From Zancudomyces culisetae HAW-14-8 (Eukaryota > Fungi > Kickxellomycota): a DNA stretch of 64,000 nt. The notes below the pieces were generated by a model. The model did not search any database and had not been told where the DNA came from. It saw nothing but the letters and a program-made list of their open reading frames with translations. The translations under genes were made by a program, and so were the position numbers. Shown here piece after piece: positions 8,395 to 64,000 of this stretch; within the stretch, counting starts at the first letter, position 1, and every line of letters begins with the position of its first letter. The stretch spans positions 372,001 through 436,000 of the forward strand of contig JBNJNM010000009.1 of assembly GCA_052426225.1 (NCBI GenBank). Reading direction: 5' to 3'.

Positions 8395-8845
8395 GCATGT
8401 CTGAATATAGTTTCAATGCATTATTCGTATTCTTGTTTTTATATTCATATTTGTCTTTTTTCGTTACTTTAAACGTACCATAATATTAGTTATTCAGTAT
8501 TGATGCATATAAATCATAAAACAAACCGCGATTTTAGGATCGTATTTTAACATCCTCCACCACTTCATTGTTAACATACTGCTAGCAATTTTTATAATTC
8601 CTATTTTCCCCAGCGCGTAAAGGTGGCAAAACCATAAACGCTAATCAAAAAGAACTAAAAGTGTGAACAAGAGCATGTATGGCTGATATTTTATTTTTCA
8701 ATTCCTAAAAAACGTGAAAATTTTTGATCAGCTAGTAAAAATAAAAAAAGGGGGAACGAGGAATGAGGAATGAGGAATTACGCAAATAATACAAGTTGCA
8801 AAGCTCAATTGAATATAAAAGTTGGTGGTTCAAAAGTTGTATATA

Positions 8846-12338: not shown

Positions 12339-12410
12339 TCCGCAATGGTCTAGTGGCTAGGATCCGACGCTCTCACCGTCGTGGCCGGGGTTCGATTCCC
12401 CGTTGCGGAA
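12339..12410 (+). tRNA. tRNA-Glu (CTC)
   Basis: Acceptor stem TCCGCAA/TTGCGGA, D arm TGGTCTAGTGGCTAGGA, anticodon arm CGACG-CTCTCAC-CGTCG, T loop GGTTCGATTCC. Confidence 0.95.
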
Positions 12411-12412
12411 AC

Positions 12413-12484
12413 AGCACCATAGCGCAGAGGAAGCGCGCAAGGCTCATAACCTTGAGGTCCCTAGATCGAAACTAGGTGGTGCTA
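12413..12484 (+). tRNA. Initiator tRNA-Met (CAT)
   Basis: A1:U72 acceptor AGCACCA/TGGTGCT, D arm AGCGCAGAGGAAGCGCG, anticodon loop CTCATAA, eukaryotic initiator-type T loop GATCGAAAC (A54, A60). Confidence 0.93.
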
Positions 12485-33598: not shown

Positions 33599-36546
33599 GA
33601 TTGATTCAAGATGTTCAACAAGATCAAGGTGTGGGAATCTGAAGTGTAGATTAACAGAGTGTGGTTGCGTGGAAAGTGAGATTGTAATTTCCTGAATTCC
33701 TTTTTAAAAGTAAAAAAAGCTTGCAAAGAAACTAAAAGGAACTGAAATAGAAATGGTGAATTTAGATATTTTTGGGATTACAAAAAAAAATAAGTGGCAA
33801 TTTAATGCTTTTGCTTTTACTTTTACTTTTGCTTTTGTTGATATAAATCATAAATAAGCTGACGTGAAATAAAAAAGCGAAAAAAACAGGTAAAAACTGA
33901 ATTCCCAACCTATACAGAAAGCGAACAAAAATGGAACAAGTAAAAACTGGTCATGAAATCATCACCATAACGGGTGGGTGGTTTATTTTAATACATCGCT
34001 TTCTTCTGGTCAGCCATTTCTAATTGGCTTGATTTGGGTATTTGTTGGCGCATTTGCTCAAAAAAAAATTTTTTATATTTCCAAGCCAATAAACATAGAC
34101 ACAAAATGCCAAATTAGCGTGGAAACATTCGGGTTTTTTGGTATAAAGGGAAATGTATGTATTTAAACTAATCTGGATTGTACATCAAATTCTTTGGGAA
34201 CAATAATTTATTTTTAATTTTTAATTTTTATGTCTGAAAATACAAAGCGTAAAAATTAAAAACGCAATCAGAACCTAACTGGGCATTGTTTACATTTTAG
34301 TTTGTTTTTCTAATTATATTTTACTGCGCTATTATAAACCCTAATTGGAATTAGTTCATAAAAGTCATATATTATAAATATGTTGTAAAAGTTGGCTAAG
34401 ACGAAAATTTGGAAAAAGCGAAATTAAGCAAATCGCTGCTAAATAGTATGCAACTGATGTCTATAGGCAAAGAATGTTGCTAAGGTTTATACCTAAAGTA
34501 TGCTCTATATTTTTCGTTTGTTTCTTATTTCACTCCTATTCAAGCTGTTTTATGCTTTCCCAAAACATTTGAGATATGAATTGTAGCGAGGATGGCTATA
34601 TTTTTATTTTTTTCAGATTCACATGTTGTTCCAAGTATAATCTAGATTACATAATTTGGTATATAAGTATCTGAATATCACATTTTTAAAAGAAAAACAA
34701 AACAAATCATATTTCTCCAGTGCGTTCAAATATTTAGGTTGTACAGTGTTTAAATCTGATACATTAAATTCAATTTAAAATTGTATAATATAGTATAAAG
34801 TATGAGGAACATTCAGGACCATCTTGTAGTGACGATTTTTTAATACCAACATTATTGCTATTATTCGTATGTTTGTTTACAATTTCAGTAATTGGTAAAG
34901 GGAAAGAAACTTGAAGAATAATGGAAATGATGTATTGTTCAAGAAGATTACATTCTTTTAAGGTTCAAGACTGCAATGGTATTTTGATTGTAGTAACATT
35001 TTTATTTGAGTATGAATAGTGTTTTAAGGAAAATAAAGTTGCTTTATTACCACAAATGTTAAGCATAGTTATATAACATATCAGTCTTATTCTGAAAACA
35101 AGCGGAGCTAATACTATTTATGAAATAAGTTAGTTTTCCAACACAGCCCGTTCTCTCGTTTCTAAAAGTTCTCTTTCTTCATTTTTAACTCATTTCAACC
35201 AAGTTACTGAATGATAAAATATGGCTAAATATGACAATAAATACTTATAAACCTAAGTCTGTTCACCCAGACCATCAGGCTCTTTGTGCTTAAGTGATAT
35301 TGATTTTGGGTCGTTGTAAAACCCTTTGACACTATTCTGAATAAAATCTACCAGCCTTTCTAGCTCTATCAACTTCATGATGAAATTCAACCAGCCGAGG
35401 TCACAAAAATTCCTTAATTACACTAGTAATGTAAATGATGGCTCTGTTTTAATTCCTTGTCATATAGTTTTTTGTGTTTTAGCATTCAAGGAGTTGGTTG
35501 TAGTTTTAGTACTATAGTTTTGTGTACTGAAGTAAAGCAACTTCAAAGTATACTAGTATCTGGTTTTCCATTTTTCAACACACTTTATTATTTCATCCAA
35601 CAGTAAAAGTGTAAACCAGAAAGCTAATCAAATACCGAATAGTGCATTTATCTTCTACTCCAGTTTCTAAATACGCACCTCCAAGGTATAATACAATCAG
35701 TATTATCTCAATACCCACAATTAAAAGAAATGTGCTATATTAACTCGTTTTACTATTATCTTTATAGAAAACGGGGTTATCACAAAAGCTTAAACCAAAA
35801 AAAAGTGATAAACCTCATACTAAATCGAGTCACAAACACAACTAACTCCAAAATACTTCACTACTTTTTTTAGGTATATTGTTAATTTGTTACAAAACCA
35901 CATAAATCATAAATAAGCTTGAAGCTCGATATACTACTACTCATAATTGTGTGTTTGGTATGCACCCCAGACAACTTCAATTGACCAAACCCTCTGAGTT
36001 TTACTGATCATTTGTGCTTTTCAACCAACTCCCACGTTCCGCATTGAACTGATGGTCTGGATGGTATATGGTTTTTACAAAGATATAACCGATCAGCCAG
36101 GTTCATACTTCGTAGATCATCTGTACATTTTGGATGATATTTGTTTGGAACATTTGAAAGCACTAAAAACAGTGCCACGATTGAAAAATGGAATTTGCAG
36201 CTAGAACTGGCTTTGACATTGGAATGAAATTGACACATGAAAAAGACGCCTTTTTCCGTTTTAATATTTTATTTCCACACACTCTAGATTTCACAGGTCA
36301 TTTGTTTTACAACTTTCAACTAAATAGAGTTTTCAAGTTTTTTTAAAAACCTGTCAAATCTAGGTATCCTATTAACACAAATATAAATAATCATCATTAT
36401 ACTATATTTGATACCAAAAATTGGCGTTTATTTTAGTTGAGCTTTTAACTTTTTAGAATTGACAGCGTAAATCACATCTTTTTACATTTCAACATATAGG
36501 TATATAAAACGAATAAAAAACTAATCCAAAAACTTTTGTGTCATAT

Positions 36547-38106
36547 TCATGATTGAGCGATATTTCGTACAATATATGAATTCGTACTATATAGTATTAC
36601 CCTTCTTAAAAGTTCCAAAATATAATACGAAAAATTTCTCGCATCAGGACTTTCGATCAAATCTAGTTCATCCTCAAACAACACAAGTTTTGTTACCAGA
36701 TTCGGTAAGTCGTGTGTAGCGTTCTCTCCCTTTTCATGGTTCTTTAGATTGTGTATTATCTTTGTCTCTATCTCCTCATTAAAGGTCGCCTTGTAAATAC
36801 AAGGTGTTAGTCCTTGAAAAAGGATTCCGTATACAGTAACATCATTGGATTCTTCTGTGCGGAGATACTTGCTATTTTTAAGGTGGCTTAAGTACAAAAC
36901 AAACATCTCTCCGATTAGCTGCGCTTCGCCGTTGGAACCATCAGTACTTCTGTCTACCTTGTTTTCAATTGCGATGTTACAATAAAATCCAAACTCGTTA
37001 TATATCGCCACATCAATTTCGGATACAATATGAATTTCAGAATCATCTATTTTTAGATATAGCTGTGCTATCTTTAATGCGGTATTTTTATTAAATCTGA
37101 AGATATCCAGTATGTTTTGTACATAACTGTTTACTACAGACTCATACGTTTTATTATCTCTCATACTCCTTAATACTGGTACAATACACTCATATATATG
37201 ATTAGTATTAGCCTCATTCATTAATTGTGTTATTTCGTATCTACTGTGTACCCATGAGTTAAGTAGAGTCAAAATCAACTTTTTTGATTTGTTTATATGA
37301 GGGTATTGCGTTTCTATATAATTCAATCCAGAAAAACTCATGTTTTCATCTTCATTAATACTTTCAAGCTCACTCTTGGAGCGAATATAGGTCTCTTCTA
37401 GTTTATCGTAGAAGTCCATCAACGACAACGACAGAATATATTTAATTTTGTTTTTGTCCTCCTTTTCCATACCAAAGAACTCCATAAATAGCTTTTTAGC
37501 TTCGTTTAAAGATTCGGAATTCACACCAAATATTTCACTGTCTGTGAAATCAGTTTTTCGAAATATTATTCTAAGATTTCCATTTTCATATATAACACGT
37601 TTACCCTCAAATAACACAACATTAGATTTGAGCATACGTTTAACAGTGGTTGCAATCGTATCTTTGTAGTTTGGATTGATAGTTTTGTTTTTAGCCAATT
37701 CCTCTAATTGGGTTTCGTTGATGCAAAGCTTTTGCATTAATTCATCCTTGGTCATTCTACGAAATCTCTTGCACATTTTCTTCAGATAATATCCGATTTC
37801 TTTGTTGTATTTACGTATGCTATCTTCATCAGATTGATATTTTAACTCGTGCTTGTTTACACCCATCAACAAATCCTCAGTAATATACTTCACAGTCCAT
37901 TTGCTTGTTGAGTTAATCTTTGTACTAGAAGTCCTGCTAGCACTTCCAACACTATCCTTTCTAGCCCTCTTTCCTCTGCTTGACCCTTCTGTCAATGATC
38001 CAATATCTTCCATTCTGTTACAAAATGCACACTTTTCACACTCTTCACACTTTTCACACTTAATACACCCTATACACATATATAACCTTTGATGTTTATG
38101 TGGCAT
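36547..38106 (-). CDS. Repeat-encoded protein copy 1: (CxxC)n + NLS-like N-terminus, C-terminal PD-(D/E)XK nuclease-like domain
   Basis: 519 aa intact ORF with CIGCIKCEKCEECEKCAFC, RGKRARK and TYESVVNSYV...EIDVAIY...IAIENK...EAQLIGEM...VYGIL. Confidence 0.75.
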   Translation of the reverse strand: MPHKHQRLYMCIGCIKCEKCEECEKCAFCNRMEDIGSLTEGSSRGKRARKDSVGSASRTSSTKINSTSKWTVKYITEDLLMGVNKHELKYQSDEDSIRKYNKEIGYYLKKMCKRFRRMTKDELMQKLCINETQLEELAKNKTINPNYKDTIATTVKRMLKSNVVLFEGKRVIYENGNLRIIFRKTDFTDSEIFGVNSESLNEAKKLFMEFFGMEKEDKNKIKYILSLSLMDFYDKLEETYIRSKSELESINEDENMSFSGLNYIETQYPHINKSKKLILTLLNSWVHSRYEITQLMNEANTNHIYECIVPVLRSMRDNKTYESVVNSYVQNILDIFRFNKNTALKIAQLYLKIDDSEIHIVSEIDVAIYNEFGFYCNIAIENKVDRSTDGSNGEAQLIGEMFVLYLSHLKNSKYLRTEESNDVTVYGILFQGLTPCIYKATFNEEIETKIIHNLKNHEKGENATHDLPNLVTKLVLFEDELDLIESPDARNFSYYILELLRRVILYSTNSYIVRNIAQS

Positions 38107-40303
38107 CTTCTTTCAAGTTACTTTGCTTTTATTTTATCTAGACGAACGTCTCTCTGTTTCGTATATCCTAAAAACAATAGAATTGTAGATTTTCTCTATC
38201 AACAATTGTGCACTATATGCTCTCTTTATTTTACTACAAACTGGCTAATATACGATGTATGCTTTAATCCACCATACAATCCTTGTACTCAATACAATGT
38301 AGTATTTACGAGTTCATTCAAGAGTTTCTAACTATTTATGCTTTTATTCAACCCTCATTGCCAAACACCACACTTCACGCTATAACATTTGCGTTGGGTG
38401 TTAGTATTTCACCAATATATTTAATACTGCAATTATAGATATATTGTATATGTGGTTGTTTGGAATTCGTAACCATTTTTCCAAAACAAAATACACAATA
38501 ACGCATACAAAAGTAAGCAAAAAGAACTGCTATGGTTTGTATAGCTATCTATTAATAAACATGATGTTTGACGTGATAAACCATTTGCATTAGTTTGTGG
38601 TGTAAATAGGTAAACAAATATGCATGTATTAACCAACACAGTCATAAAAACAGCACTTATTATTACTTTTTGAACTTGAGCATTATTACTAACTGACACA
38701 CACACAAAAGGTAGCTCGACATGAATATTCACATAATCAAAGCTAGTATTAACATTTTCAATAATAAGTAAATGACTCAGATGTTACTAAGCTGGAACAA
38801 CAAACTAGAATGGGGTTGACAATAGCATACTTGAACACACAAACTGAAGCCAACTGGAGTAAATAAACATTGAATGTCTAGGTCTATTCAATGTGTTTGT
38901 TAAACCATGAAGTACACAAACTAAAAATTGTATAGCCTCAAGTATCAGCATACTAAACTACAACACTGATTAACTGGTATAATATCTTTCCACCATTAAC
39001 TGTTGGATAACAATATTATCACCAACTAACAATGCAAATATTAACTCTGTTTTAATTTCTTGTCATATTGTTTTTTGTGTTTTAGCATTCAAGGAGGTGA
39101 AGGTAACTTTGATACTATAGTTTTGTGTACTGAAGTAAAGCAACATCAAAGTATACTAGTATCTGGTTTTCCATTTTTCAACACACTTTATTATTTCATC
39201 CAACAGTAAAAGTGTAAACCAGAAAGCTAATCAAATACCGAATAGTGCATTTATCTTCTACTCCAGTTTCTAAATACGCACCTCCAAGGTATAATACAAT
39301 CAGTATTATCTCAATACTCACAATTAAAAGAAATGTGCTATATTAACTCGTTTTACTATTATCTTTATAAAAATGATACCACACAAAAGTTTAACCAAAA
39401 AAAAGTGATAAACTTAATACTAAATCGAGTCACAAACACAACTAACTCCAAAATACTTCACTACTTTTTTTAGGTATATTGTTAATTTGTTACAAAACCA
39501 CATAAATCATAAATAAGCTTGAAGCTCGATATACTACTACTCATAATTGTGTGTTTGGTATGCACCCCAGACAACTTCAATTGACCAAACCCTCTGAGTT
39601 TTACTGATCATTTGTGCTTTTCAACCAACTCCCACGTTCCGCATTGAACTGATGGTCTGGATGGTATATGGTTTTTACAAAGATATAACCGATCAGCCAG
39701 GTTCATACTTCGTAGATCATCTGTACATTTTGGATGATATTTGTTTGGAACATTTGAAAGCATTAAAAACAATACCACGATTGAAACATAGAATTTGCAG
39801 CTAGAACTGGCTTTGACATTGAAATGAAATTGACACATGAAAAAGACAATTTTCCTTTCCGTTTTAATATTTTATTTCCACACACTCTAGATTTCACAGG
39901 TCATTTGTTTTACAACTTTCATCCTGGAACGCGTAGATTTTTTTTAGAGAGGATAGAAAAAAACTAATCCCGGTTAAAGATGCTCTAAAAGCGACCAAAC
40001 AGAACTTCATTGCATACGAATACACAGCCATTCATTTGTTGCTGCTACTCCTCATTCCGGGATCGTGAATGTTTAAGTCGAGTTAAAATTACATCTATAT
40101 TGCGTAGATTTACAGTTTGTAGAATATTCAATATATTTGATAAGCGTTGACTATAAAACCGGATATTCAAGTAGTAATCATTATCTCTATTCAAAATCAT
40201 TCATATTTTTCTTTCATTTTTCAAGAAAGAAACTAAACACACAAAATAGTATATCAAAAAAAAACCATTACAGTTACTTTACAAACGAGAAAAAACCACA
40301 AAT

Positions 40304-42118
40304 ATGCTGTTTCTTATGGAGCTAAAAGTGCCAGAACCCTCGCCACAGACAACCCTTAACAATGAAAGAAAAAACGGCTTCTTTCCTGTGGAGGACATGG
40401 GATTGTTTATTAACGGCGAAGAGGCTGTTGCGCAAAGAGAGAAGGTGCTGAAAATTGTACGCGCGGAACCAGAAATCTTTGGTATGAAAGAGATATACCA
40501 TATGAGTAGAACAGAAAAAATTGAACACTTATTGAAGCAGGAGCTTAGAATGGTAGAGTTACTAAGGGAGGATAAGCTTACCTCAGATGATATGCTTTTG
40601 GGTATGTCTACAGTTATTGGACTTTCAGGACCATATCGTTTAACCAGAAGCAATTTTATCCTCAGTTGAAAATCAATCAAATCCAGAGCAAATTGAAAAG
40701 TTTGTTAAACCGCTAGAAGAATATAGAATCATTTGATGCTATGCACAAACCGAATTGAACTAAACATAATGGGTAATGGATAATGGATATCTACACCTCA
40801 ACTATGTAGCGTACATTTAATTAATCTGTTACAAAAATACATAAACGTTTCACGAGATGGGACGTTTAGTCGGATAAAAAGTGCCGATCCCCGAATGACA
40901 TATATTTCAATGGTTCAGTTGAGAACAGGAATAGCCTCTGGGATGGGTGTTCTTTTGGCAAGAGCCGTTACTGTTGCCACCAGATACACTGCTGTACGCC
41001 GACAGTTTGGAAAGGTAGGAAAACCAGAAACGCCAGTAATAGATTACGAAATTGTCCAGCATCGAATAATCCCACTGATTGCTCAGGCCTATGCCATGAT
41101 CGGAATGACTCATGAACTTAAGAATCAATTTGTAAGAACCACAGATGCAATCGCAAAGAATGACTTTAGTTTGTTGAAAGAAATGCACGCAACAAGTGCT
41201 GGTCTAAAGAAGTGGAGTACAACAATAAGCATCTATGGAATTGATACCTGTCGTCATGTATGTGGTGGCCATGGATACTCGCAGTTCTCTGGATTGAACC
41301 AACTGTTTACAGATAATTATCCTGGTATTATATACGAAGGCGATAATTACATTCTTGCTCAGCAAACCACAAGATATGTACTAAATATTGCTGGGGATTT
41401 ACTTAAGGGGAGCAGTGACATTGAAAATAATGATACAACCAGGTATATGCAGCGATTCATCACTAAGAGTAATGTCAGTCCTAGTACATCAGCGTTGACT
41501 TGGGTTGGAAGAACTGCCAACCAATTAATTTCAAACAGAACCACACTTATTGATCTTCTGGCATATCGCCTGGCATCTATGACCTCAGATTTGGCACAAA
41601 AAATACACTTTAAGGGACATAAGTTTGAAGATTCTCTTGTAACCGCTCAAGTGATATCAATGGCACATTCAGAGTTTATAGTCGCCCTGTACTTTGACCG
41701 CTACCTCAAAACACTTCCACAAAGTTCACCACTAGCACCAATCCTCGATTTGATATTTGTCATATCGGCGCTGACTTTCTTGACCAGAAATATTGGAGAA
41801 TTACTGCTATTGCCAGCAGAGGCATAAATAAACAAGCAATTTATTGAAGACCTGGAAAGTGAGTATGCCAAAAGGATAAAGGAAGCTAGAGAACAAGCTG
41901 TACCACTCGTTGATGCATTTGATATTCCTGATGAAATATTAAACTCGAGTTTGGGCCGTTACGATGGTGATGTATACAGAGACCATGTCAGGAGAGCATT
42001 AAAAGAACCGCTTAACAGCGAGAAATTTGGAAATGAAATCCGTACAAAATTCTACAACGAGTATACAAGGACAGTACTTTCTAGCGGAAATAGCACCATG
42101 GGAAGTGCAAAGCTTTAA
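40304..42118 (+). pseudogene. Peroxisomal acyl-CoA oxidase pseudogene inserted in repeat unit 2
   Basis: ACOX motifs LNNERKNG, II*CYAQTEL (Gly codon is TGA), MDNGYL, RYTAVRRQFG, CGGHGYS, YEGDNYIL and LVDAFD...LNSSLGRYDGDVY, ending SAKL* (PTS1). It has a broken frame near 40670, an in-frame TAA at 41825-41827, and lacks the middle domain between YAQTEL and MDNG. Confidence 0.9.
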
Positions 42119-42357
42119 CTAACATTTGAATGTACGGCTTTTTGCATCCCACTTACCCTTGAAACAACTTACTGGTATATCTGTTACTCCTCAACCTTTT
42201 ATAACCGGCTTTATTGGAAAGTGAATGAGATGTGTATCCTAGATGCATCAAAAACAAGTAGGTAGATGTTGTGTAAACATTTGGTTTTTAAAGATGCTAT
42301 TAAGATATAAAATATATAAAACGAATAAAAAACTTATTCAAAACCTCCATGTCATAT

Positions 42358-43953
42358 TCATGATTGAGCGATATTGCACACCAAGTGTGAATTGGAATCA
42401 TACAAGACAACTCTTCGTAATAGTTCGATTATGTAATAAGAATAATTACGAGCACCTGGGCTCGTAATTAAATTTGGATTTCCCTTAAACAGTACAAACT
42501 TTGATATCAAATTCAAAAATTTGACTGGAGGCGTTTTCATCTCTTTAATATTCTTTTGATTTTGTAGAATCTGGTTTGCTACCTCTCGGGTAAAGTGACC
42601 CTTGTATATAGTTGGTCTTAGACCAATAAATAAAATCCCGTATACAGTTTTTTCGTTACACTTCTCTATATCTACTCCATCTTCAGAACTGAATAAATCT
42701 AAGAAATATGCAAACATTTCACCAATAATTTGGGCTTTTGCGTTTGTGCCATTAGTTGGATTTTGGGTCTTATCCTCTATGACAAGGTTTCCTTTATAGG
42801 AATCCTTGTCGTATAACATAACATCTACGCCAGATGCTATACTTATACTTGAGCTGCGTATGTTGAAGTTTAAGCTCCCTATTTTTATTTTGTGACTTTT
42901 GTTAAAGCTAAGGATTCCTAGTATGCTTTTTACATAGTCATCAATGAACTTTTCATTGTTTTCATCGCCTATAATAGCCCTTAATGTTGGTAGAATACAT
43001 TGGTATGAGTCGTTTCTGTCTGACTCGCTCATTAACTGCAATATTTCATTTTCGCTAATTGCTCTCGAGTTCAGGAGAGTTAGAATCGATTTTTTTGATC
43101 CACTTATACGAGTATACTCAGTTTCTATATCATCCAATCCGTGAAAGCACAAAAGCTTATGTTCATCTTCCTCCTTCTCCTTCTCCTTCTCCTTTTTCTG
43201 TTTTCCCTTTGCAAGTTCACTCTTAGAGCGAATATAGGATTCCTCCAATTTTTTATAAAATTCTATGAGTGTTAGAGAAAGTATATACTTAATTTTGTTA
43301 TTCTTATCTTTTTCCCTGCTTATGAATTTAATAAAGTTTTCTTTAGCTGAGTGTAGAAATTCGCTATCTACACCAAACACCTCTTCATCTGAAAATGTAG
43401 TCCTAAAACTTTCCAATATTAGTTCTCCATTGTCATATATCAATTGTTCACAGTCAACTAAAACAACATAATACGAAAGTATGGCTTCAGCAACGGTTGC
43501 GTCGATACCGTTGTAGTCGGGCTTAATCTTTTTATTCTTAGTTAATTCTTCATATTGCGTTTTGTTGATGCAAAACTTTTGCATTAATTCATCCTTGGTC
43601 ATTCTAACTGTTCTCTTGTCTATATAATCTTTATAACGACCGAGTTCCTTGTTTACTATACATCTGTTGTGTAAATCGGTTGGGTATAGTGAATCGAACC
43701 TTTTTATGTCTACTGGAAAATCATCAGTAATATACTTCACAGTCCATTTGCTTGTTGAGTTAATCTTTGTACTAGAAGTCCTGCTATCACTTCCAACACT
43801 ATCCTTTCTAGCCCTCTTTCCTCTGCTTGACCCTTCTGTCAATGATCCAATATCTTCCATTCTGTTACAAAATGCACACTTTTCACACTCTTCACACTTT
43901 TCACACTTAATACACCCTATACACATATATAACCTTTGATGTTTATGTGGCAT
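42358..43953 (-). CDS. Repeat-encoded protein copy 2 (PD-(D/E)XK nuclease-like)
   Basis: 531 aa; first ~75 aa almost identical to copy 1; NNEKFIDDYV...GVDVMLY...LVIEDK...KAQIIGEM...VYGIL. Confidence 0.75.
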   Translation of the reverse strand: MPHKHQRLYMCIGCIKCEKCEECEKCAFCNRMEDIGSLTEGSSRGKRARKDSVGSDSRTSSTKINSTSKWTVKYITDDFPVDIKRFDSLYPTDLHNRCIVNKELGRYKDYIDKRTVRMTKDELMQKFCINKTQYEELTKNKKIKPDYNGIDATVAEAILSYYVVLVDCEQLIYDNGELILESFRTTFSDEEVFGVDSEFLHSAKENFIKFISREKDKNNKIKYILSLTLIEFYKKLEESYIRSKSELAKGKQKKEKEKEKEEDEHKLLCFHGLDDIETEYTRISGSKKSILTLLNSRAISENEILQLMSESDRNDSYQCILPTLRAIIGDENNEKFIDDYVKSILGILSFNKSHKIKIGSLNFNIRSSSISIASGVDVMLYDKDSYKGNLVIEDKTQNPTNGTNAKAQIIGEMFAYFLDLFSSEDGVDIEKCNEKTVYGILFIGLRPTIYKGHFTREVANQILQNQKNIKEMKTPPVKFLNLISKFVLFKGNPNLITSPGARNYSYYIIELLRRVVLYDSNSHLVCNIAQS

Positions 43954-45974
43954 CTTCTTTCAAGTTACTTTGCTTTTATTTTATCTAGACGAACGTCTCT
44001 CTGTTTCGTATATCCCAAAAACAATAGTGCAGTATATGTTCTCTTTATTCTATTACAAACTGGCTAATATATGATGTATGCTTTAATTCACCATACAATC
44101 CTTGTACTCAATACAATGTAGTATTTACGAGTTCATTCAAGAATCCCTAACTATTTATGCTTTTATTCAACTCTGATTGTCAAACACCACACTTCACGCT
44201 ATAACATTTGCGTTGGGTGTTAGTATTTCACCAATATATTTAATACTGCAATTATAGATATATTGTATATGTGGTTGTTTGGAATTCGTAACCATTTTTC
44301 CAAAACAAAATACACAATAACGCATACAAAAGTAAGCAAAAAGAACTGCTATGGTTTGTATAGCTATCTATTAATAAACAATATGTTTGATGTGATAAAC
44401 CATTTGCATTAGTTTGTGGTGTAAATAGGTAAACAAGTATGCATGTATTAACCAACACAGTCATAAAAACAGCACTTATTATTACTTGTTGAACTTGAAA
44501 AATGATAACCAACTGACACACACACAAGGTAACTCGACATGAATATTTACATATTCAAAGCCGGTATTAACATTTTCAATAATGAGTAGATGACTCAGAT
44601 GTTACTAAGCTGGAACAACAAACTAAAATTAGGTTTACAATAGCATACTTGAACACACAAACTGAAGCCAACTGGAGTAAATAAACATTGAATGTCTAGG
44701 TCTATTCAATGTGTTTGTTAAACCATGAAGTACACAAACTAAAAATTGTATAGCCTCAAGTATCAGCATACTAAGCTACAACACTGATTAGCTGGTATAA
44801 TATCACCTCACCATTAACTGTTGGATAACAATATTATCACCAACTAACAATGTAAATATTAACTCTGTTTTAATTTCTTGTCATATTGTTTTTTGTGTTT
44901 TAGCATTCAAGGAGTTGGTTGTAGTTTTAGTACTATAGTTTTGTGTAACTGAAGTAAAGCAACTTCAAAGTGTACTAGCAACTGGTTTTCCATTTTTCAA
45001 CACACTTTATTATTTCATCCAACAGTAAAAGTGTAAACCAGAAAGCTAATCAAATACCGAATAGTGCATTTATCTTCTACTCCAGTTTCTAAATACGCAC
45101 CTCCAAGGTATAATACAATCAGTAATATCTCAATACCCACAATTAAAAGAAATGTGCTATATTAACTCGTTTCACCATTATCTTTATAAAAATGATACCA
45201 CACAAAAGCTTAAACCAAAAAAAAGTGATAAACCTCATACTAAATCGAGTCACAAACACAACTAACTCCACAATACTTCACTACATCTTTTTAGGTAGAT
45301 TATTAGTTTGTTACAAAACCACATAAATCATAAATAAGCTTGAAGCTCGATATACTACTACTCATAATTGTGTGTTTGGTATGCACCCCAGACAACTTCA
45401 ATTGACCAAACCCTTTGAGTTTTACTGATCATTTGTGCTTTTCAACCAACTCCCACCTTTCACATTGAACTGATGGTCTGGATAGTATATGGTTTTTACA
45501 AAGATATAACCGATCAGCCAGGCTCATACTTCGTAGATCATCTGTCCAGTTTGGATGATATTTGTTTGGAACAGTTGACAGCACTAAAAACAGTGCCACG
45601 ATTGAAACATAGAATTTGCAGCTAGAACTGGCTTTGACATTGAAATGAAATTGACATGAAAAAGACGCCTTTTTCCGTTTTAATATTTTATTTCCACACA
45701 CTCTAGATTTCACAGGTCATTTGTTTTACAACTTTCATATTCATAGAGTTTTCAAGTTTTTTTAAAAACCTGTCAAATCTAGGTATCCTATATAACACAT
45801 AAACATATAAATAATCATCAATATACTATATTTGATACCAAAAATTGGCGTTTATTTTAGTTGAGCTTTTAACTTTTAAGAATTGACAGCGTAAATCACA
45901 CCTTTTTAAATTTCAACATATAGGTATATAAAACGAATAAAACTAATCCAAAAACTTTTGTGTCATATTCATGA

Positions 45975-47600
45975 TTAAGCGATATTGCACACCAAGTGTG
46001 AATTGGAGTCATGCAAGACAACTCTTCTAAACAACTCTATAATAAAGTAGGAATAATTACGAGCACCTGGGCTCGTAATTAAGTTCTCTATGCCTTTAAA
46101 AAGCACAAGCTTTGATACCACATTCGATACTTTTTCTGTAATCTCCTCGTAGTTCTGATACTTTTTATGATTTTTTATGATCAGCTCTGCTGTTTTACTG
46201 TCGAAAGTAGCTTTATAAAACGTTGGTCTTAAACCGATAAAAACAATCCCGTAAACTGTTTTTTCCTTTAACCTATCCAAATTGATTTTATTATCCACAG
46301 TGAATTGGCTCATATATACGGAGAACATCTCTCCAATAATCTGCGCTTCAGCGTTTTTGATATTGTATCCTGTGTCTGTTTTGTCTTCGACACCGAAGCA
46401 ATAGTTAGTTACATTTTCTTTGAATAGACTCACATCCACTTGGGATGATAGGCTTACGTTATTGGTGTTAATCCTGAGATTTAAGCTACCAATGTTTATA
46501 CTGTTGTTTTTGTTATAGGAAAAGATTCCTAATATGCTTTTTACGTAGTCGTCAATGACTTTTTCATCCTTTTTATTGCCTGTCATAGCCCTTAGTGTTG
46601 GTAGAACACACTGATATGAGTCGTTTCTGTCAGCTTCATTCATCAGCTCGATCATTTCATCTTTGTTTTTTACTCTTGAGTTCAGAAGAGTCAAAATTGA
46701 TTTTTTTGATCCGTTTATGTGGGTGTATTCTGCTTCTATATTATCCAATTTAGAAGAACTCATTTTTTTATCTTCATTTTCATCCTCATCCTCATCCTCA
46801 TCCTCATCCTCATCCTCATCCTCATCCTCATCCTCATCCTCATCCTCATCCTCATCCTCATTAATCCTTTCAAGCTCACTCTTGGAGCGAATATAGGTCT
46901 CTTCTAGTTTATCGTAGAAGTCCATCAACGACAACGACAGAATATATTCAATTTTGTTTTTGTCATCTTTATCATCGTTTATGAACTTAATAAATTCTTC
47001 CTTTGCTTGATCCAGACTTTTTTTACGAACACCGAATATTTTACTGTCTGTGAAATTAGTTTTTCGATATATTAATCTAAGATTTCCATTTTCATATATA
47101 ACACGCTTACCCTCAAATAACACAACACTAGATGTGAGATTACGTTTAACAATGATTGCAATCGTATCTTTGTAGTTTGGATTGATAGTTTTGTTTTTAG
47201 CCAATTCCTCTAATTGGGTTTCATCAATGTAAAGATAAAGCGAGAGTACGTCTTGAGCCATGTTAATGGTTCCTTTGCTCAATTCTTCCCTATAACGCCT
47301 GAGTTTGTTTATTTTTATACACTCGATTTGTAAATCGTCTGGATATAATATCTTGTGCTCAGGAAATGTTGAAAAACAAGCTTCAATACTCTCCATAGTC
47401 CATCTACAAGTAGAGTCAAGCTTTTTACTAGAAATGCTGCTGTCACCTTCAACACTATCCTTTCTAGCCCTCTTTCCTCTGCTTGACCCTTCTGTAGATG
47501 ACCCAATATCTGACATTCTGTTACAAAATTCACACTCTTCACACTCTTCACACTCTTCACACCTTATACATATATATAACCTTTGATGTTTATGTGGCAT
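45975..47600 (-). CDS. Repeat-encoded protein copy 3 (PD-(D/E)XK nuclease-like) with poly-(ED) linker
   Basis: 541 aa; CIRCEECEECEECEFC, RGKRARK and KDEKVIDDYV...QVDVSLF...FGVEDK...EAQIIGEM...VYGIV. Confidence 0.75.
   Translation of the reverse strand: MPHKHQRLYICIRCEECEECEECEFCNRMSDIGSSTEGSSRGKRARKDSVEGDSSISSKKLDSTCRWTMESIEACFSTFPEHKILYPDDLQIECIKINKLRRYREELSKGTINMAQDVLSLYLYIDETQLEELAKNKTINPNYKDTIAIIVKRNLTSSVVLFEGKRVIYENGNLRLIYRKTNFTDSKIFGVRKKSLDQAKEEFIKFINDDKDDKNKIEYILSLSLMDFYDKLEETYIRSKSELERINEDEDEDEDEDEDEDEDEDEDEDEDEDENEDKKMSSSKLDNIEAEYTHINGSKKSILTLLNSRVKNKDEMIELMNEADRNDSYQCVLPTLRAMTGNKKDEKVIDDYVKSILGIFSYNKNNSINIGSLNLRINTNNVSLSSQVDVSLFKENVTNYCFGVEDKTDTGYNIKNAEAQIIGEMFSVYMSQFTVDNKINLDRLKEKTVYGIVFIGLRPTFYKATFDSKTAELIIKNHKKYQNYEEITEKVSNVVSKLVLFKGIENLITSPGARNYSYFIIELFRRVVLHDSNSHLVCNIA
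46780..46861. repeat. (TCATCC)n hexanucleotide microsatellite encoding the poly-ED tract of copy 3
   Basis: About 13 direct tandem copies of catcct. Confidence 0.95.
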
Positions 47601-49049
47601 CTTCTTTCAAGTTACTTTGCTTTTATTTTATCTAGACGAACGTCTCTCTGTTTCGTATATCCTAAAAACAATAGAATTGTAGATTTTCTCTATCAACAAT
47701 TGTGCACTATATGCTCTCTTTATTCTATTACAAACTGGCTAATATATGATGTATGCTTTAATTCACCATACAATCCTTGTACTCAATACAATGTAGTATT
47801 TACGAGTTCATTCAAGAGTTTCTAACTATTTATGCTTTTATTCAACCCTCATTGCCAAACACCACACTTCACGCTATAACATTTGTGTTGGGTATTAATA
47901 TTGCAACAGTATATTTAATGCCGCATTTATAGATATATTGTATATGTGGTTGTTTGGAATTCGTAACCATTTTTCCAAAACAAAATACACAATAACGCAT
48001 ACAAAAGTAAGCAAAAAGAACTGCTATGGTTTGTATAGCTATCTATTAATAAACAATATGTTTGATGTGATAAACCATTTTTATTAGTTTGTGGTGTAAA
48101 TAGGTAAACAAATATGCATGTATTAGCCAACACAACCACAAAAACAGCACTTATCACCTTTTTGAACTTGAAGAATGATAACCAACTGACACACATACAC
48201 AAGGTAACTCGACATGAATATTCACATAATCAAAGCTAGTATTAACATTTTCAATAATGAGTAAATGACTCGGATGTTACTAAGCTGGAACAACAAACTA
48301 AAATTAGGTTTACAATAGCATACATGGACACACAAACTGAAGTCAACTGGAGTAAATAAACATTGAATGTCTGGGTCTATTCAACGTGTTTGTTAAACCA
48401 TGAAATACACAAACTAAAAATGACATGGTAAATAAAATGACATGGCCTCAAGTATCAGCATACTAATCTGCGTCATTCTGATTAAATGGTGTAATATCCC
48501 TCCCACCCTCCATTAACTGCTTAATATTAATTCAACTTCTAAATAGTGTAGTAAAAAAAAAGGTTGCTTTATGACCACAAGGGTTAACTATAATTATATA
48601 ATATATCATTCTTGATTTCAAATATAAGCTAAGTCAATAGATCGAAAAGAATAAATATGGATTTTTACAAATAAGTAAAGCCACCAGCAGAGTGGAAAGA
48701 GAGAAAATGAGCACAAAGTCGCAAAAGTAACTTATTGTTCACATTATATTCAACAAATAATTTACCCCCTCTTTTTTTTGAAAGTATAGTGATAATGAAT
48801 ACACTCTACCTGTCCAAAGTGTTTAATCAAACAAGAAGGAATAGATATCTAAAATCGAATACTTGTTTAGGGATATCACACTCTTGTATCATTATGGTAT
48901 TCGTTTGATTTTAGTTACCCAATTACTCGAGTGTTTAATTATTGGGTTGTTGGTAGTAAATATATAAAAATTATGACATTTAAAAAATAATGGATAATGA
49001 ATAAAAATGATAGTTAAGTATACAAGGAGGAGGTAACAAAAAAGAAAGA

Positions 49050-50039
49050 CTATACAGACATGTTCATTGAAATTTTCGGATGAGGATTATAATTTTCAAG
49101 AGTGAAATCTTCAAATTGGAAATCCTCAATATTGGTAACAGTTCTATTGATACGAAGAGTTGGGAAAGGATTTGGAATGCGCTCAAGCTGGATATTTAGA
49201 GCATCTACATGGTCCAAATACACATGAGCATCACCCATACAATAAATCAATTTTCCAGGCTTAAGGTTGGTTACATGAGCAATCATAATAGTCAATAGGG
49301 CGTAAGAGGCAATGTTAAAAGGAACGCCTAGGCCTGTATCACATGAGCGCTGATAAAACTGGCAAGAGAGAGCGGCTTTCTCTGGATCATCAGGGTTGGA
49401 TACATAGAACTGAGCAAACATATGGCATGGAGGTAGTGCCATAATATGCAAATCGGCAGGGTTCCAGGCTGACAGGATTAGTCGGCGATCGTACGGGTTG
49501 GATCTGATCTTGTTGATAATGTGCGCAAGTTGATCATATCCCATTCCTGAATAATTCGCATCACAACTGGTGTAAGGAGCACCAAAATGACGCCATTGGA
49601 AACCATATACAGGTCCCAGATCATTCTCTCTCCGATCGTGCAATCCGATACTGTCAAGATATTCACGTGAACCGTTACCGTCCCAAATACGTACACCCTT
49701 CTTTTGGAGAATAGTGGCGTCAGTCTGGCCACGGATAAAGAACAGCAATTCTTCAACTATTGCGCGGAAAAAGACCCGTTTTGTTGTCAACAAAGGAAGT
49801 GAAATACACCCAGTATCGCTGTTGGAGAGATCGAAGCGTAGTTGCTGTGGTGCAAAGATCGAGATTGTTCCAGTGTTTGTCCGATCGATTCGCTTTTCGC
49901 CATGTTGTAGGATTTGACGGATAAGGTCTAGATATTGGTTTTCCTCATTGTTGACGGGTGTGGTAGATTCAGAAACTTTCAAAGCAGTGGTGGTGGGTGG
50001 CAATTCGGATGGAATTGGATCGTTTTGTGATTGTAACAT
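49050..50039 (-). CDS. CDC21: Thymidylate synthase
   Basis: Motifs [66 protein letters not shown] and GDAHVY. Confidence 0.97.
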
Positions 50040-53099: not shown

Positions 53100-55328
53100 T
53101 TATAACCAAGATTGCCAACCTACAAACATTCTACATAATCTTGCAGGATCAGTTGCTTCCATAAGCAATTCGTTGACATGACAATCGAGTTGAATGTTGG
53201 AGTTGGACAATTTGTTTGAAATCTCCAAAATTACACGTTCAGCATCAGAATTAATCGTATTAAAAACTAGGCTGTCTTCCACCAAATTCTCGGCGTTATT
53301 ATTGGCATTACCACGTGATGATAGAGAATTAGTGGTTGGAGCATAGATGGAAAGAAGAGCGTTGTATTGCTTGTTGAATGTGACTTTGAAGGAGTCGGAC
53401 CAGTTGTACAACGGGTCCAGTCGTAATACATTGAGGATAGTGATGATGAGGGGCTTTATGGAGGTGAGAAGTGATAGGGATGAAGAGCAGTGGGAAGCAA
53501 AGGGACTATTACAAAGTTGAGTTTCCATGGCATGTTCATCATTATAATTATCCAATTCATCATCATTATTATTATTGTTGTTGTTGTTGTTGTTGTTGTT
53601 GGTGTTACCATATGATAAATATGAAGATGAAGATATTGATAAAATTCCCAAAGCATCAACCATATTTCTAGTTAATCGGAACGGAACCAATTCAGGGACA
53701 GGCAAGAGTTTTCCATACCCAAAGGCAATACCCAAATCAATCATGACCAATTCACACGATCCACAATCCAACAAAATGTTTTGGCAATGCCGGTCACCGA
53801 TTCCCAACATCCACCCCACCATGCTGCTTATTGCCAAGCTCTGGCTATATCTAGTTTGGTTGGTAATGTAATCTAGGCTGGTTTTTGCACTTGAAATTAT
53901 GAATTGTCGGAATTTTGGTGTAATAGACTTAGTCAAGTTTATAAATGTATTTTTTAACTCTTCATCTTTATTACTGCTCTTTGTTGTTGTTGCTGTAGTT
54001 GTTGTTGTTGTTGTTGTTGTTGTTGTATTTGAATTTGATTTTTGTTGGGCTTGAATCATTAATCTTCGATATTGTTGAATATCCTTCATATTATATAATT
54101 TTGTAGATAAATATGTTCCATAAGGAATAGTATTACCAACAAATTGTAACACTCCACATTGACTAGTTATGGGAATTACTATATAAGTACGGATTCGCAT
54201 TTGTCCTTTTCCTTTACCTTTACCTTTTCCTGTTGAACTGAAATTACTATTATTATTGCTGTTGCTGTTGCTGTCACTGTTTTGGTTAATTAAACTAAAT
54301 ACTTGCTCTATAACTGCATCTTGTCTAATATCATCCTTTCCTTTAACCACTTGTTTATGTATAATTCCATCACTTCCCAAAATACTAATTATTTTTGGTA
54401 AGTTTATTCCACCTGCCAATTCATAATGTTGATATATTTGTTCTATATACACTATCCCTCCTCCTTCTCCTCCACCACTAGTGTTGTTATAGTGTGTATT
54501 TTGTACAACATTATCAAAGAAATACGGATTGTTTTCGGTAATAATGGGAATCTTAGTCCTTAGAACTCCTTCTGGTTTTCCCATGTTGGCTATTCGGTTG
54601 ATTTTCCAATTACTTGGAAACTTGATTTTGTCGGTTGTTGATGTACTTGATGGTTTGGAATTCGACATTTCAATATACGAGGATATTAACAAGTCGAAAT
54701 TGCTAATCATGTCATGATATTCCGAACCTCCAAAACCAGAATTCCCGTCATTCTTAATATTAGCATTGGTATTGGTATTTGTATTTGTATTTGTGTTGCC
54801 ACTTGATGAGTAATAAACACGTTGTAATTTATCTAGCAAAATACTTGCTACGCATTCACTCCCATTCCCATTACTATTACTACTACTATTCCCATTACTA
54901 TTACTACTATTACTTTTGTTAGTAAAAGTTTTCTGTTTAAGCGATATTTCGTTTGTGGTATTTCTCAATTTAATGGAGAAAATGGTAGATAAAGTTAAAT
55001 GGGGCAGTTTGGTACAAACTTTATAAACCAATCGAAAGAGTAATTCCAAAAACCGATTACTATTACTCTTATTTTTATCTTTTACATGATTTGGATTTGG
55101 GTTTGGGTTTGGATTTGGGTTTGGATTAGAATAGGTATCTTGGTAAAGAACATTTAATTTGGCACACAATTGAGTAAATACAACTAACCATTTATGACTT
55201 TTTATTCGAGAGTGTAAACCGACTCTTTCCCAAATTCCATCGATTTTATTATTGATTCCTCCAAAAGTCAAGAGTAATTTTGTAATTACAATAATTGCAT
55301 AACTATCACTTGCAACTCGATTATTATT

Positions 55329-55369
<41 letters not shown>

Positions 55370-56902
55370 GAATTAGGTACCTTGCAAAGTACCATAGACT
55401 GCTTGTTAGGTAATAATCCAAATCCTTGGTTTTATCAGCTAGTAGGTTTTCATCCATACTGATTTGTTGTCGTAATTTATCAATTCGTCTCTTTAAATTA
55501 GCAGCCTTAGCAGCAATGACCTTACTACTAACATTAGCATCATTTTTCCCACCAATATTACTGGGATTGATATTGATATTGACAGTAATAGATGATAGCT
55601 CAGCAATTAACCCTTCCATTTCTCGTTTCTTTTCCTTTAAGACCAAATCCAAAATCTTGTTGTTTTCGGTAATATCTCGTGATATTAACTCGAGTTGTGA
55701 ATCTGCATATTTTGCCAGCGAAAACATTATATCCACAACCATGTTATTATCCTCACCACCACTATTACTACTGGCTGTATCTAGTAATTGGATCGCATTG
55801 CTATAATATGCCTTAATAATCTCTTTGGGCCTTGCTTGTCGTTGATTTGCTAACCATTCAGATGCCAGATAGTACATTTCAGCCATTTGTTTTACATTTA
55901 CATTTACATTTACATTTAAATTTGCATTTGCATTGTTGTTGTTGCTGTTGTTGTTGTTTTTATTTTTATTAAGAATTAAAAGTTGTTCTTTCGAGGTATT
56001 AATGTTGGATAATATCATGGATAATGCCATTTCATGTTTACCACCCATATACAAACATTTGGCCTGTAATGTCTTGACCATAGTGCAATCCAATTGGACT
56101 TTTGACGTCAGCCGGTTTATAGTTTTCATGGCAGTAGTACTAAAATAAAGATATTCATTGCCAATTCCACCAAATGAAGAATTCCCCCTTTTATTCAAGT
56201 AGCCGCCACTATAATTCCCATCAAAATTATTACTATTAGTATTAGTATTAGTATTAGTATTGGTATTATTATCAAAATAGGAATTGTTGGCAATATTGTT
56301 GTTGATTATCAATAGCGATGCAGTTTTATATCCCTCGACTATTCGAGGATGTTTTGGATATTTGTTGATCAGAATTTCCCATAATATTAGGTTGAATTCG
56401 TAATTGTAGTTTTTGACATCCACATTCACTTTTCCGGCACCGGCACCGGCACCGACACCGACACCGACACCGACACCATTATTATTGAATGACGAGGATG
56501 AACATGATTTTAAAAATTGTTGGATTTCTAATAAATCATCTATAAACCGTTCGGTTAAAAACATTGGTTTGTAGGTAGTTAGAATATATCCAAACATACT
56601 TGTAATATCTGCGACCACTTTACTATCTTTGGTATTGTTACTGTTACTGTTATTGCTATTGCTATTGCTATTGTTGTTATTATTTGCTCCACCATAAACA
56701 TAGCCATAGCCATAGCCATAGCCATAGCCATTATTGCGTTTATTTTTGCTTAGTGTTTTGTTTAGGTTGAGTAATTCAATGTTGGAAAATGCAATATTTC
56801 TGTTCCAGTAATTTAATAATGAATAAATTACTTTATTCTTGTCGAAATATTGTTGATTAGAAATATTTTGAGGCGTGAGTAATAGTTGAAATGTTGGTAG
56901 TA

Positions 56903-56946
<44 letters not shown>

Positions 56947-62900: not shown

Positions 62901-64000
62901 TAATACCAACACATTTTCCCATTTTTTAATCCGATTGCTATATTTGCTACTCATAATGCTAGCCGGCTGAGTCTGGCTAGTTATTTTCGTTAATATCCCA
63001 ACACAACCTTCTGCGCTCAATAAATATAGCCTGTCATTCACACTGCCTGCCACAACTGCCCACAAATGTACTGTTTTCAACAACACTACCGCCAATGTTT
63101 GAACACTAACCAGTCTCCGTTTGATCTGTTCGGTATCAAAACCATTGGTATCGACTATCTCTCCAATCAGCTCTTGTAAACAGCTTGGTTCATCTTGCTC
63201 TTGCCCGTCATTGCCCCGCCTGAAGGTATTTTGATCTTTATTATGCTTGTTGGTTTGTTGATGTAATTGTAGTTTTAATTGTAATTGTTGTTGTGTTTTA
63301 TAATTTAGTATTACAATATCGCTTGCAATTTCCAAATACAACCACTCAAAGACTGTATTGTTCAGAACGATAACATCACCACTGCTCTCAATCATTATAT
63401 ATTTCAACACGTTGTCCCATACATTGCCACCCACCAGTCTCGCCAATCCCAATGTCATTTGTTCATAGCTATGTGAAGGATTAAATAGTTCGTACACAAA
63501 CACTTCATTGATTTTCTCAAAACTTGTCGTTTCTCCAAACATCGAATGATCCAAATTAACGAGTCTATTTACCAATGCCTTGTTTTCAAGAATCTCACGC
63601 TCCAAAACTATTTCATAATCCTTTTCTTCCTCACTTTTAACAGCCGGGCTACCACAAAACAATGTCGGAATTGTTGGTCCCTTGAGCCACCGTCCATATA
63701 TATACGCCAATTTTAAACTCATCAACTGAATGTCCATGTTATACGAACTGGAATACTTCATTATTGTATGCTTAATCCCTTTTGATACAAGTTTTAAAAG
63801 CTTTGTTCTGTTTTTTCTAGTCTCCTTCAACTTCATTATTGAACTATAAAACACTTTTAAAATATTTAATTGTACTGCTCCTTCACGTCGACCCCCAAAA
63901 CTACCAAAACTACCACCACCACCATTGCCTCCAATACTACTACCTCCAATACCAACTCCAACTCCAACACTACCTCTCCCTTCACTCCCACTTTTACTAA
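53100..64000 (-). CDS. TEL1: PIKK kinase Tel1/ATM (5' end beyond window)
   Basis: Motifs AGGINLPK, KGKDDIRQDAVIEQVF, LGIGDRHCQNIL, IDLGIAF and PELVPFRLTR, with FATC ATDPARLCRMFVGWQSWL. The frame stays open upstream of 63854 to the window end. Confidence 0.9.
62421..62480. repeat. (TGATTT)n microsatellite encoding a QN repeat in Tel1
   Basis: Direct tandem hexamers; one of many such coding microsatellites in this gene. Confidence 0.9.

Follow-up and report, generated by a model that had tools for sequence, protein, structure and literature searches.

The window analysed here, 64,000 nucleotides (nt) of contig C9 of the Zancudomyces culisetae HAW-14-8 genome assembly (JBNJNM010000009.1, C9:372001-436000), contains a tandem array of three related genes, the open reading frames (ORFs) ORF1, ORF2 and ORF3, whose coding sequences differ far more from each other than the non-coding DNA between them. 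Analysis of this array and of its relatives elsewhere in the genome showed that the divergence of the coding cores is that of old classes under purifying selection rather than the product of rapid positive selection, that ectopic gene conversion is ongoing in both flanks and cores, and that the same locus can hold different classes in different isolates. We consider it probable that the array belongs to a species-specific, nuclease-like gene family in which ectopic gene conversion moves old coding classes about between homogenised flanks, the classes being kept for self/non-self recognition or conflict.

The HAW-14-8 assembly comprises 27.1 Mb in 25 contigs and was made from PacBio HiFi reads at 48x (PMC12611240). 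Repeat units were set by self-BLAST of the window together with an alignment of three units, which placed units of ~3.6 kb across 35422-48519. All three ORFs are intact. As they lie on the minus strand, a spacer forms the upstream region of the gene on its low-coordinate side. The closest matches of ORF1-ORF3 were exclusively Z. culisetae proteins. Across the genome the family has eight intact copies on four contigs and at least eight decayed ones. The dispersed intact copies, three on C11 (C11a, C11b and C11c), one on C8 and one on C15, are each accompanied by 1.4-1.8 kb of the shared upstream DNA. The array copies are named after their units (U1-U3). The features of the array are as follows.

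35422-39024: unit U1
39025-44842: unit U2, which holds the 2.4-kb insertion at 39922-42312
44843-48519: unit U3
35422-36546, minus strand: segment X, a distal upstream-type non-coding segment 3' of ORF1, at the low-coordinate end of the array and not followed by a gene
36547-38106, minus strand: ORF1, 519 amino acids (aa), with a C-terminal part of class A, common to two C11 copies, C8 and C15
38107-39921, minus strand: spacer 1, 1.8 kb of non-coding DNA upstream of ORF1, made up of the proximal 0.9 kb and distal X
39922-42312, no strand assigned: U2 insertion of 2.4 kb with a C-terminal acyl-CoA oxidase (ACOX) fragment (ORF 40895-41827, plus strand), convergent with ORF2
42358-43953, minus strand: ORF2, 531 aa, with a core of class B, private to this copy in this genome
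42394-42966, minus strand: predicted PD-(D/E)XK domain of ORF2 (residues ~330-520), from a domain model
43864-43926, minus strand: (CxxC)n tip of ORF2
43954-45974, minus strand: spacer 2, 2.0 kb of non-coding DNA upstream of ORF2
45975-47600, minus strand: ORF3, a 541-aa mosaic with a C8/U1-like middle and its last ~850 nt 97.4% identical to C11a (contig C11)
47601-48519, minus strand: proximal upstream region of ORF3, with homology to the other units stopping at ~48519

In 100-nt windows of the three-unit alignment, the spacers were mostly 90-100% identical (83-88% in a few windows), and the last ~180 nt before each ATG-proximal boundary were 86-100% identical. Over the upstream 960 nt, the window trio averaged 94.4% identity and the full set of eight genomic copies 93.1%. 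The first ~200 nt of the coding sequence (CDS) averaged 93.4% in the trio; U1 and U2 were 99.4% identical there, and U3 reached ~90%, with an indel in the 9-bp CxxC repeat. Identity in the CDS core was 61-66% at the nt level (mean 63.5%; 50-65% per 100-nt window) and 45-51% at the aa level. The transition/transversion ratio (ts/tv) was ~2.1-2.4 in the flanks vs. 1.0 in the core, indicating saturation of the latter. Patches of high identity also occurred inside the core, namely 92-93% between U1 and U3 at 37524-37724 and 85% between U2 and U3 at 42919-43019. An earlier sequence-only reading of this DNA had claimed that the coding regions diverge more than the spacers of the same repeat and had called for windowed identity of the aligned units, and both the windows and the overall values (flanks ~93-94% vs. 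core 61-66% nt) bear this out. Its statement that the spacers and the first ~200 nt match 'almost base for base' holds in that they are very similar (mostly 90-100%) and not in the literal sense. It had further described the rest of the CDS as extensively replaced without stops or frameshifts, which is correct for the three intact ORFs with their 45-51% aa identity and has to be tempered by the high-identity patches. Repeat-induced point mutation (RIP)-like or other targeted hypermutation was considered as well and rejected: the flanks are spared, the core has no excess of transitions (ts/tv 1.0), and the classes are common to several loci.

Rates of nonsynonymous (dN) and synonymous (dS) substitution and their ratio (omega) were estimated by the Nei-Gojobori method on a codon alignment of the eight intact paralogues. 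Between classes, the proportion of synonymous differences (pS) was 0.65-0.82, i.e., saturated, with dN of 0.35-0.5 and omega of 0.13-0.3; within classes, dS was 0-0.3 and omega 0.2-0.35. Omega values of 1.2-1.5 were obtained in some pairs for the disordered N-terminal segment (codons 37-80). By analogy, the classes may be kept apart by selection for diversity, each with a specificity of its own.

All eight intact paralogues proved to be block mosaics in which class membership shifts along the gene, as seen in the protein alignment. The C-terminal ~250 residues fall into three classes: A (U1, C11b, C11c, C8 and C15), B (U2) and C (U3 and C11a). Residues 100-200 group otherwise, with U1, U3 and C8 together, U2 with C11a, C11b and C11c, and C15 alone. 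A sliding nearest-neighbour scan found that blocks matching a copy on another contig at 97-100% lie beside blocks with only 55-65% identity to that same copy. Some tracts between chromosomes are nearly identical: U3 and C11a share 97.4% identity across 849 nt (dS of 0.011 over the last 151 codons), and dS between U1 and C15 is 0.000 over the last 153 codons. Since the end points of the blocks vary, the exchanged pieces are gene-conversion tracts and not fixed cassettes.

Maximum likelihood trees of three segments (codons 80-200, codons 285-553 and the upstream region) conflicted with each other in approximately unbiased (AU) tests, for which the groups had been chosen after the alignment was viewed. 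The group (U3,C11a) received 100/100 support in codons 285-553 and was rejected in codons 80-200 (p-AU 1.8e-4). The group (U1,U3,C8) was acceptable for codons 80-200 and rejected C-terminally (7e-38) and upstream (3e-5). Monophyly of the array copies (U1,U2,U3) was rejected in both coding segments (p 3e-42 and 6e-57) but not upstream (p 0.48), where the tree was shallow, star-like and poorly resolved.

Two isolates were compared in all, the second being COL-18-3, available as an older Illumina assembly (GCA_001969505.1); the baseline divergence of the isolates was taken from flanking DNA (98.3-100% identity). Family proteins of COL-18-3 are 85-94% identical to particular HAW-14-8 copies. ORF2 corresponds to the COL-18-3 gene P0001 (98.3% nt and 94% aa identity), and the COL-18-3 protein P0002 has no HAW-14-8 counterpart above 57% identity. 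The COL-18-3 contig LSSK01000006.1, which contains no Ns, is collinear with the C15 locus of HAW-14-8. Here the unique flanks are 99.5-100% identical between the isolates and the family upstream region 90-99%, while the whole CDS is 54-66% identical at the nt level and 45% at the aa level. The two isolates thus hold different classes at the same locus, i.e., the class was replaced at the level of the locus. The COL-18-3 version has ~1.7 kb extra with a 416-aa ACOX gene, absent in HAW-14-8, beyond which ~100% identity resumes. At C8, the two isolates share 99-100% identity in the flanks and 90-96% in the upstream region; within the CDS, identity is 58-79% over the 5' two-thirds and 98.5% at the 3' end. 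The COL-18-3 allele of C8 is 91% identical in aa to the HAW-14-8 copy at C15 vs. 76% to the HAW-14-8 allele at C8. The COL-18-3 scaffold adjacent to the thymidylate synthase gene (LSSK01000252.1) seems to lack unit 3; however, the unit 3 upstream region is joined there to unit 2 by a 303-N gap (4323-4625), and because of this join the scaffold cannot show whether unit 3 exists in that isolate.

The sequence-only reading had offered two explanations for the inverted pattern. Strong diversifying selection (dN/dS >1) finds no support in the omega of 0.13-0.3 and pS of 0.65-0.82 between classes; high dS with low dN/dS is the outcome of its segment-wise test that it had named as favouring exchange among old alleles. 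Swapping of old divergent coding sequence into a homogenised scaffold agrees with the saturated dS, the switching of nearest neighbours, the conflicting segment trees and the difference in class between isolates, a comparison it had also proposed and which revealed different classes at C15 between flanks of 99.5-100% identity. Its term 'cassettes' is apt as far as old coding sequence is exchanged and misses that the tracts have variable ends. As for its analogies, that to polymorphic toxins fails on architecture, given the full-length homology of all classes and the lack of a conserved partner ORF, and that to incompatibility loci appears to fit the sequence pattern.

The upstream DNA is found genome-wide only beside family members, in nine copies at 88-95% identity. 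Spacer 1 and the ORF2 upstream region share 93% identity across 1785 nt, and spacer 1 has no conserved ORF. Segment X (35422-36546) is 89-95% identical to 39025-39921 and 44843-46129, and in the dispersed copies it sits upstream of the proximal promoter region. Depending on the copy, upstream homology stops at 1431, 1535, 1615 or 1785 nt. The spacer is therefore part of the gene unit and neither an independent repeat nor a transposon with defined ends: both candidates were rejected, given the presence only beside family genes and the ends that vary among copies, with no defined transposon termini (terminal inverted repeats, long terminal repeats or target site duplications). A small spacer ORF, considered as a partner or antidote gene, was likewise rejected, as it is frameshifted or stopped in most copies. 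Older versions of the spacer, at 71-72% identity, adjoin decayed copies on C21, C13 and C6. Decayed copies (C21:912977-915318, C21:1259436-1261778, C13 and C6) have many stops and 28-35% aa identity, with the upstream region still recognisable.

The insertion in U2 also has counterparts. Its ORF 40895-41827 matches Pfam ACOX_C_alpha1 (E 3.8e-58) and corresponds to the C-terminal half of an acyl-CoA oxidase. The layout of a family gene plus ACOX recurs at C11a (86% identity over 5 kb) and at the C15 locus of COL-18-3, and ACOX sequence thus travels with the family gene.

The encoded proteins consist of a length-variable (CxxC)n tip encoded by 9-bp repeats, a basic patch resembling a nuclear localisation signal (NLS), a Ser-rich stretch, a middle domain, an acidic linker and a C-terminal domain predicted to be of the PD-(D/E)XK type. 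Sequence searches of ORF1-ORF3 against Pfam, PADLOC and the Protein Data Bank (PDB) gave nothing significant, and an ESM Atlas feature search returned unnamed fungal clusters and a weak HSDR_N lead only. In a profile search of 1.84 billion representatives, Z. culisetae alone yielded full-length relatives; a further ~15 remote matches of 160-330 aa aligned to the C-terminal part. When these were added to the alignment, the C-terminal 232 residues gave a model with a mean predicted local confidence (pLDDT) of 77.6 and the element order H-E-E-E-H-E-E-H (H, helix; E, strand). Structural comparison by VIA-align matched it to BpuSI (3s1s; Z 11.1, 154 aligned residues, root-mean-square deviation 3.6), DrdV (7lo5; Z 9.4), HsdR (3h1t; Z 8.5) and NucC (Z 7.2); two mitoribosomal proteins likewise scored Z ~10. 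The top Foldseek matches all belonged to the PD-(D/E)XK superfamily and were individually weak (E 4e-3 to 0.1). The residues D377, E393, K395, Q408 and E412 (ORF2 numbering) are invariant in all eight copies, and the catalytic D...(D/E)-x-K arrangement of the superfamily is present as D377 followed by E393-x-K395, on strands 2 and 3. The modelling thus showed a predicted PD-(D/E)XK nuclease fold with an intact catalytic motif at the C-terminus, and the protein would be expected to act as a nuclear nuclease.

Comparison of alignments with hhalign connected the window family to a family of ~270-aa proteins (probability 99%, E 4e-18) with at least 596 members by profile/word search, all of them 'hypothetical' and without a Pfam domain. 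They occur in chytrids, Zoopagomycota, Mucoromycota and many Basidiomycota, and also in Selaginella. This PD-(D/E)XK-like family has conserved motifs, among them the catalytic one in the form PD ... Q/E-E-D-K ... E-A-Q-L, and an N-terminal S-x-S-x-W motif. Some members lie among ordinary nuclear genes and others on plasmid- or virus-like contigs: a Boothiomyces homologue adjoins a protein-primed PolB, and on an 87-kb metagenomic contig a homologue lies among RNA-polymerase subunits and an SNF2 helicase. A distant homologue in IMG/VR (UViG_3300036715_003133, 4703-8861) is divergently oriented beside a 144-aa secreted Cys-rich ORF and a GH18 chitinase, a layout that, by analogy, resembles killer-toxin clusters.

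A homologue of this kind is also present in HAW-14-8 itself. Contig C24 (116 kb) consists of concatenated copies, both head-to-tail and inverted, of a 26,032-bp unit with 27% GC, which encodes PolB, a 398-aa homologue (35% identity to the window family, E 2e-15), a lectin/LysM/chitin-binding/GH18 protein fused to a NucA/NucB DNase, a fused Rpb2/Rpb1 RNA polymerase, DUF5483, DUF5906 and an SNF2/DEAD helicase. With this gene content the unit is a killer-plasmid-like element. Directly 3' of the toxin-like chitinase-DNase gene lies a different ORF of 155 aa. A small tree places the plasmid copy with the nuclear family, at weak support (50/42). Such elements were recently reported in Zoopagomycota and Mucoromycota (PMC13348850, PMC13556262); the C24 element is not mentioned in the HAW-14-8 assembly paper (PMC12611240). 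A link to the Panaeolus toxin cluster of Heneghan et al. was considered and rejected, as the homologue is on a different contig.

In the mechanism that we propose, the copies keep trading sequence through ectopic (non-allelic) gene conversion as well as recombination. One homogenised pool, ~93% identical, comprises 1.5-2 kb of upstream DNA and the first ~70 codons, and codons ~80-520 persist as a few ancient classes under purifying selection. The classes move between loci in blocks with variable ends, sometimes with replacement of the whole gene, and the homogeneous flanks would supply the homology that enables the exchange. Selection for diversity would hold the classes apart, presumably through a role of a nuclear nuclease in self/non-self recognition or in conflict with plasmid-like elements. 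A more specific version, which we put forward only tentatively and regard as rather unlikely, is that the family constitutes a nuclease-based self/non-self system of an early-diverging fungus, serving allorecognition or else defence against, or addiction to, killer-plasmid-like elements, with specificity classes under balancing selection and redistributed among several loci by conversion across homogenised promoters. Whichever biological role applies (allorecognition, defence or that of a selfish element), its assignment here is indirect.

Several points weigh against the proposed reading. Omega is below 1 within classes as well. The classes could also stay separate simply because heteroduplexes between diverged cores are rejected, with the flanks homogenising meanwhile, and function (a long 5' untranslated region (5'UTR) or a regulatory RNA), not conversion alone, could account for part of the conservation of the upstream 1-2 kb. 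The AlphaFold model of the whole protein was poor (pLDDT 50), Foldseek and VIA searches with it were uninformative, and the locally confident middle domain (~115-235) got no fold match. In C11a and C11c the 9-bp repeat has changed in length, so that the first ATG is no longer in frame and the start would be Met32; the Cys-rich tip may, judging from these starts, be dispensable. The comparison covered two isolates only, one of them as an Illumina assembly; a chimeric COL-18-3 C15 contig is unlikely, as it would need two wrong joins.

Among the alternatives, one dispenses with selection for diversity and is in our opinion unlikely. The cores would be old paralogue lineages drifting under purifying selection, with conversion starting in the flanks and aborting at the diverged core (a mismatch-repair barrier), or with flanks constrained as promoter or 5'UTR. 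It accommodates omega of 0.13-0.35 everywhere, the varying ends of the conversion tracts, a flank divergence (K ~0.06-0.1) near the within-class dS, and flanks of older decayed copies that are only 71-72% identical. However, whole-core replacement between isolates and near-identical core blocks on different chromosomes show that conversion does cross the core, which should erode the classes, and non-coding DNA far more similar than synonymous sites is left without explanation. It is improbable, in turn, that the family is a selfish element, i.e., a gene that, by analogy with Spok or wtf, acts as a nuclease-based driver or in a homing-like manner and spreads to new loci, whose own nuclease may start conversions and whose differences in copy number and position reflect drive. 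In favour of this, the family is species-restricted, multi-copy and dispersed, with decayed copies, and loci differ in gene content between isolates; the nuclease domain is apparently intact in sequence and model, relatives occur on mobile plasmid-like elements, and Spok genes also pair a nuclease domain with gene conversion between paralogues (PMC6660238, PMC9972908). Against it speak the lack of defined termini, of a kinase or other antidote domain (Pfam, three ORFs) and of a conserved partner ORF, and omega below 1 on all segments, which indicates maintained protein function.

We hold it to be quite improbable that the nuclear copies are orphan immunity genes that neutralise killer-plasmid toxins, such as the chitinase-DNase fusion of the 26-kb element, with classes matching toxin variants as proposed for yeast nuclear Imm genes. 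The homologue near the chitinase-DNase gene on that element, the IMG/VR homologue adjoining a GH18 chitinase and the 144-aa secreted Cys-rich ORF, and the precedent of diverse nuclear Imm paralogues without adjacent toxins (Heneghan et al., PMC11848437) would agree with this. The strictly conserved catalytic residues, however, point to an enzyme rather than a binder, and the ORF that directly follows the toxin gene on the 26-kb element is the 155-aa one, not the homologue. In addition, the hallmark motifs of the family are missing from Pezizomycotina Imm sequences (supplement of 10.1101/2024.10.25.620242), no Pfam or hidden Markov model (HMM) link to Imm proteins was found, none of the remote matches with looked-up sources came from yeast, and many homologues lie among ordinary nuclear genes. 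A recent tandem duplication after which the coding part came under strong positive selection is very improbable: it would account for nearly identical flanks beside very different cores and for omega of 1.2-1.5 in some pairs at codons 37-80, but not for saturated synonymous sites, omega of 0.13-0.3 and ts/tv of 1.0 in the core, nor for classes common to copies on other chromosomes and in another isolate. Least credible of all is an assembly artefact with identical spacers created by collapse or consensus polishing. Nothing positive speaks for it, apart from the 303-N gap inside the repeat in the older Illumina scaffold. Collapse is unlikely because the units differ in both flanks and cores, with unit-specific differences in the spacers, and because the assembly was made from HiFi reads at 48x; the same architecture was seen again at five dispersed loci and, for two of the loci, in the independent COL-18-3 assembly.

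The window is eukaryotic DNA and also encodes, besides the ACOX fragment, MCM5, thymidylate synthase and a 3584-aa PI3K/FATC kinase. Beyond the upstream region of ORF3 lies the following gene.

49050-50039, minus strand: thymidylate synthase gene

The kinase is encoded at 53100-63854 (minus strand) by a single, unusually long and intron-free ORF with PI3/PI4-kinase and FATC domains (Tel1/ATM-like). At 12339-12484, tRNA-Glu(CTC) and tRNA-Met(CAT) lie in tandem, 2 nt apart, which suggests a dicistronic pair.

For Zoopagomycota, nothing is known on allorecognition, drive or anti-plasmid defence, and the locus constitutes a concrete, testable candidate that combines an intact predicted nuclease family, idiomorph-like class replacement between two isolates, active interchromosomal conversion and kinship with killer-plasmid genes. 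The analysis also delineates a PD-(D/E)XK family that has hundreds of fungal members and neither annotation nor a Pfam model, and provides a clean example of concerted evolution of regulatory DNA together with long-term coding diversity within one gene family. Should the self/non-self reading be true, such a system would be built on an unannotated family widespread in fungi and fungal plasmid-like elements.

Allorecognition or heterokaryon-incompatibility loci with discrete haplogroups, namely het, doc, cwr and rcd-1, have been described in Neurospora (PMC4540973). As in those, an island of deep divergence with sharp borders lies between near-identical flanks at one locus, and there are a few discrete classes under purifying selection rather than a continuum; at C15, deeply diverged classes between conserved flanks were found in the two isolates. 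Unlike those loci, the Z. culisetae classes belong to a family of many copies, among whose loci ectopic conversion moves them; the protein has a predicted PD-(D/E)XK nuclease domain and not HET, NLR or another known het determinant, and the host is a gut symbiont of the Zoopagomycota. The Spok genes of Podospora (PMC6660238, PMC9972908) are likewise a fungal multi-copy family with a nuclease domain, strain-variable copy number and position, and conversion between paralogues. In contrast to Spok, the Z. culisetae family has no kinase (antidote) domain and no detectable sequence relationship, and its classes are far more deeply diverged. With the Imm family and captured genes of killer plasmids (virus-like elements, VLE; PMC11848437, PMC13348850, PMC13556262) it shares homologues on cytoplasmic plasmid-like elements, diversified nuclear paralogues, as reported for Imm in yeast nuclei by Heneghan et al. 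(PMC11848437), and a setting of conflict. Here the differences are that no sequence or motif link to canonical Imm was found, that the catalytic residues are conserved, and that the window genes adjoin no toxin or chitinase gene but only each other, the ACOX fragment and thymidylate synthase; adjacency to a toxin or chitinase gene was found only for the distant IMG/VR homologue and, loosely, for the C24 copy.

At the level of the domain, the predicted core fold and the D...E-x-K on consecutive strands are those of the nuclease domains of type IIG/IIL/I restriction enzymes (BpuSI, DrdV and HsdR) and of NucC. The Z. culisetae protein differs from these by a sequence identity of 10-13%, the lack of methyltransferase and helicase modules, an NLS-like patch and a Cys-rich tip, and its eukaryotic host. 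Polymorphic-toxin architecture proper (a conserved trunk, unrelated C-terminal toxins and a cognate immunity gene) was not found, as the classes align over their full length. The Z. culisetae modules are all full-length homologues of one fold in a eukaryote, with no toxin-immunity pairing, site-specific recombinase or fixed cassette border, in contrast to bacterial polymorphic-toxin and orphan-immunity arrays and restriction-specificity shufflons. What is common to them is the tandem arrangement of modules and conserved homology that flanks divergent modules and permits their swapping, and the self/non-self reading, if true, would make the family a eukaryotic counterpart of the bacterial shuffling of restriction-specificity and immunity cassettes.

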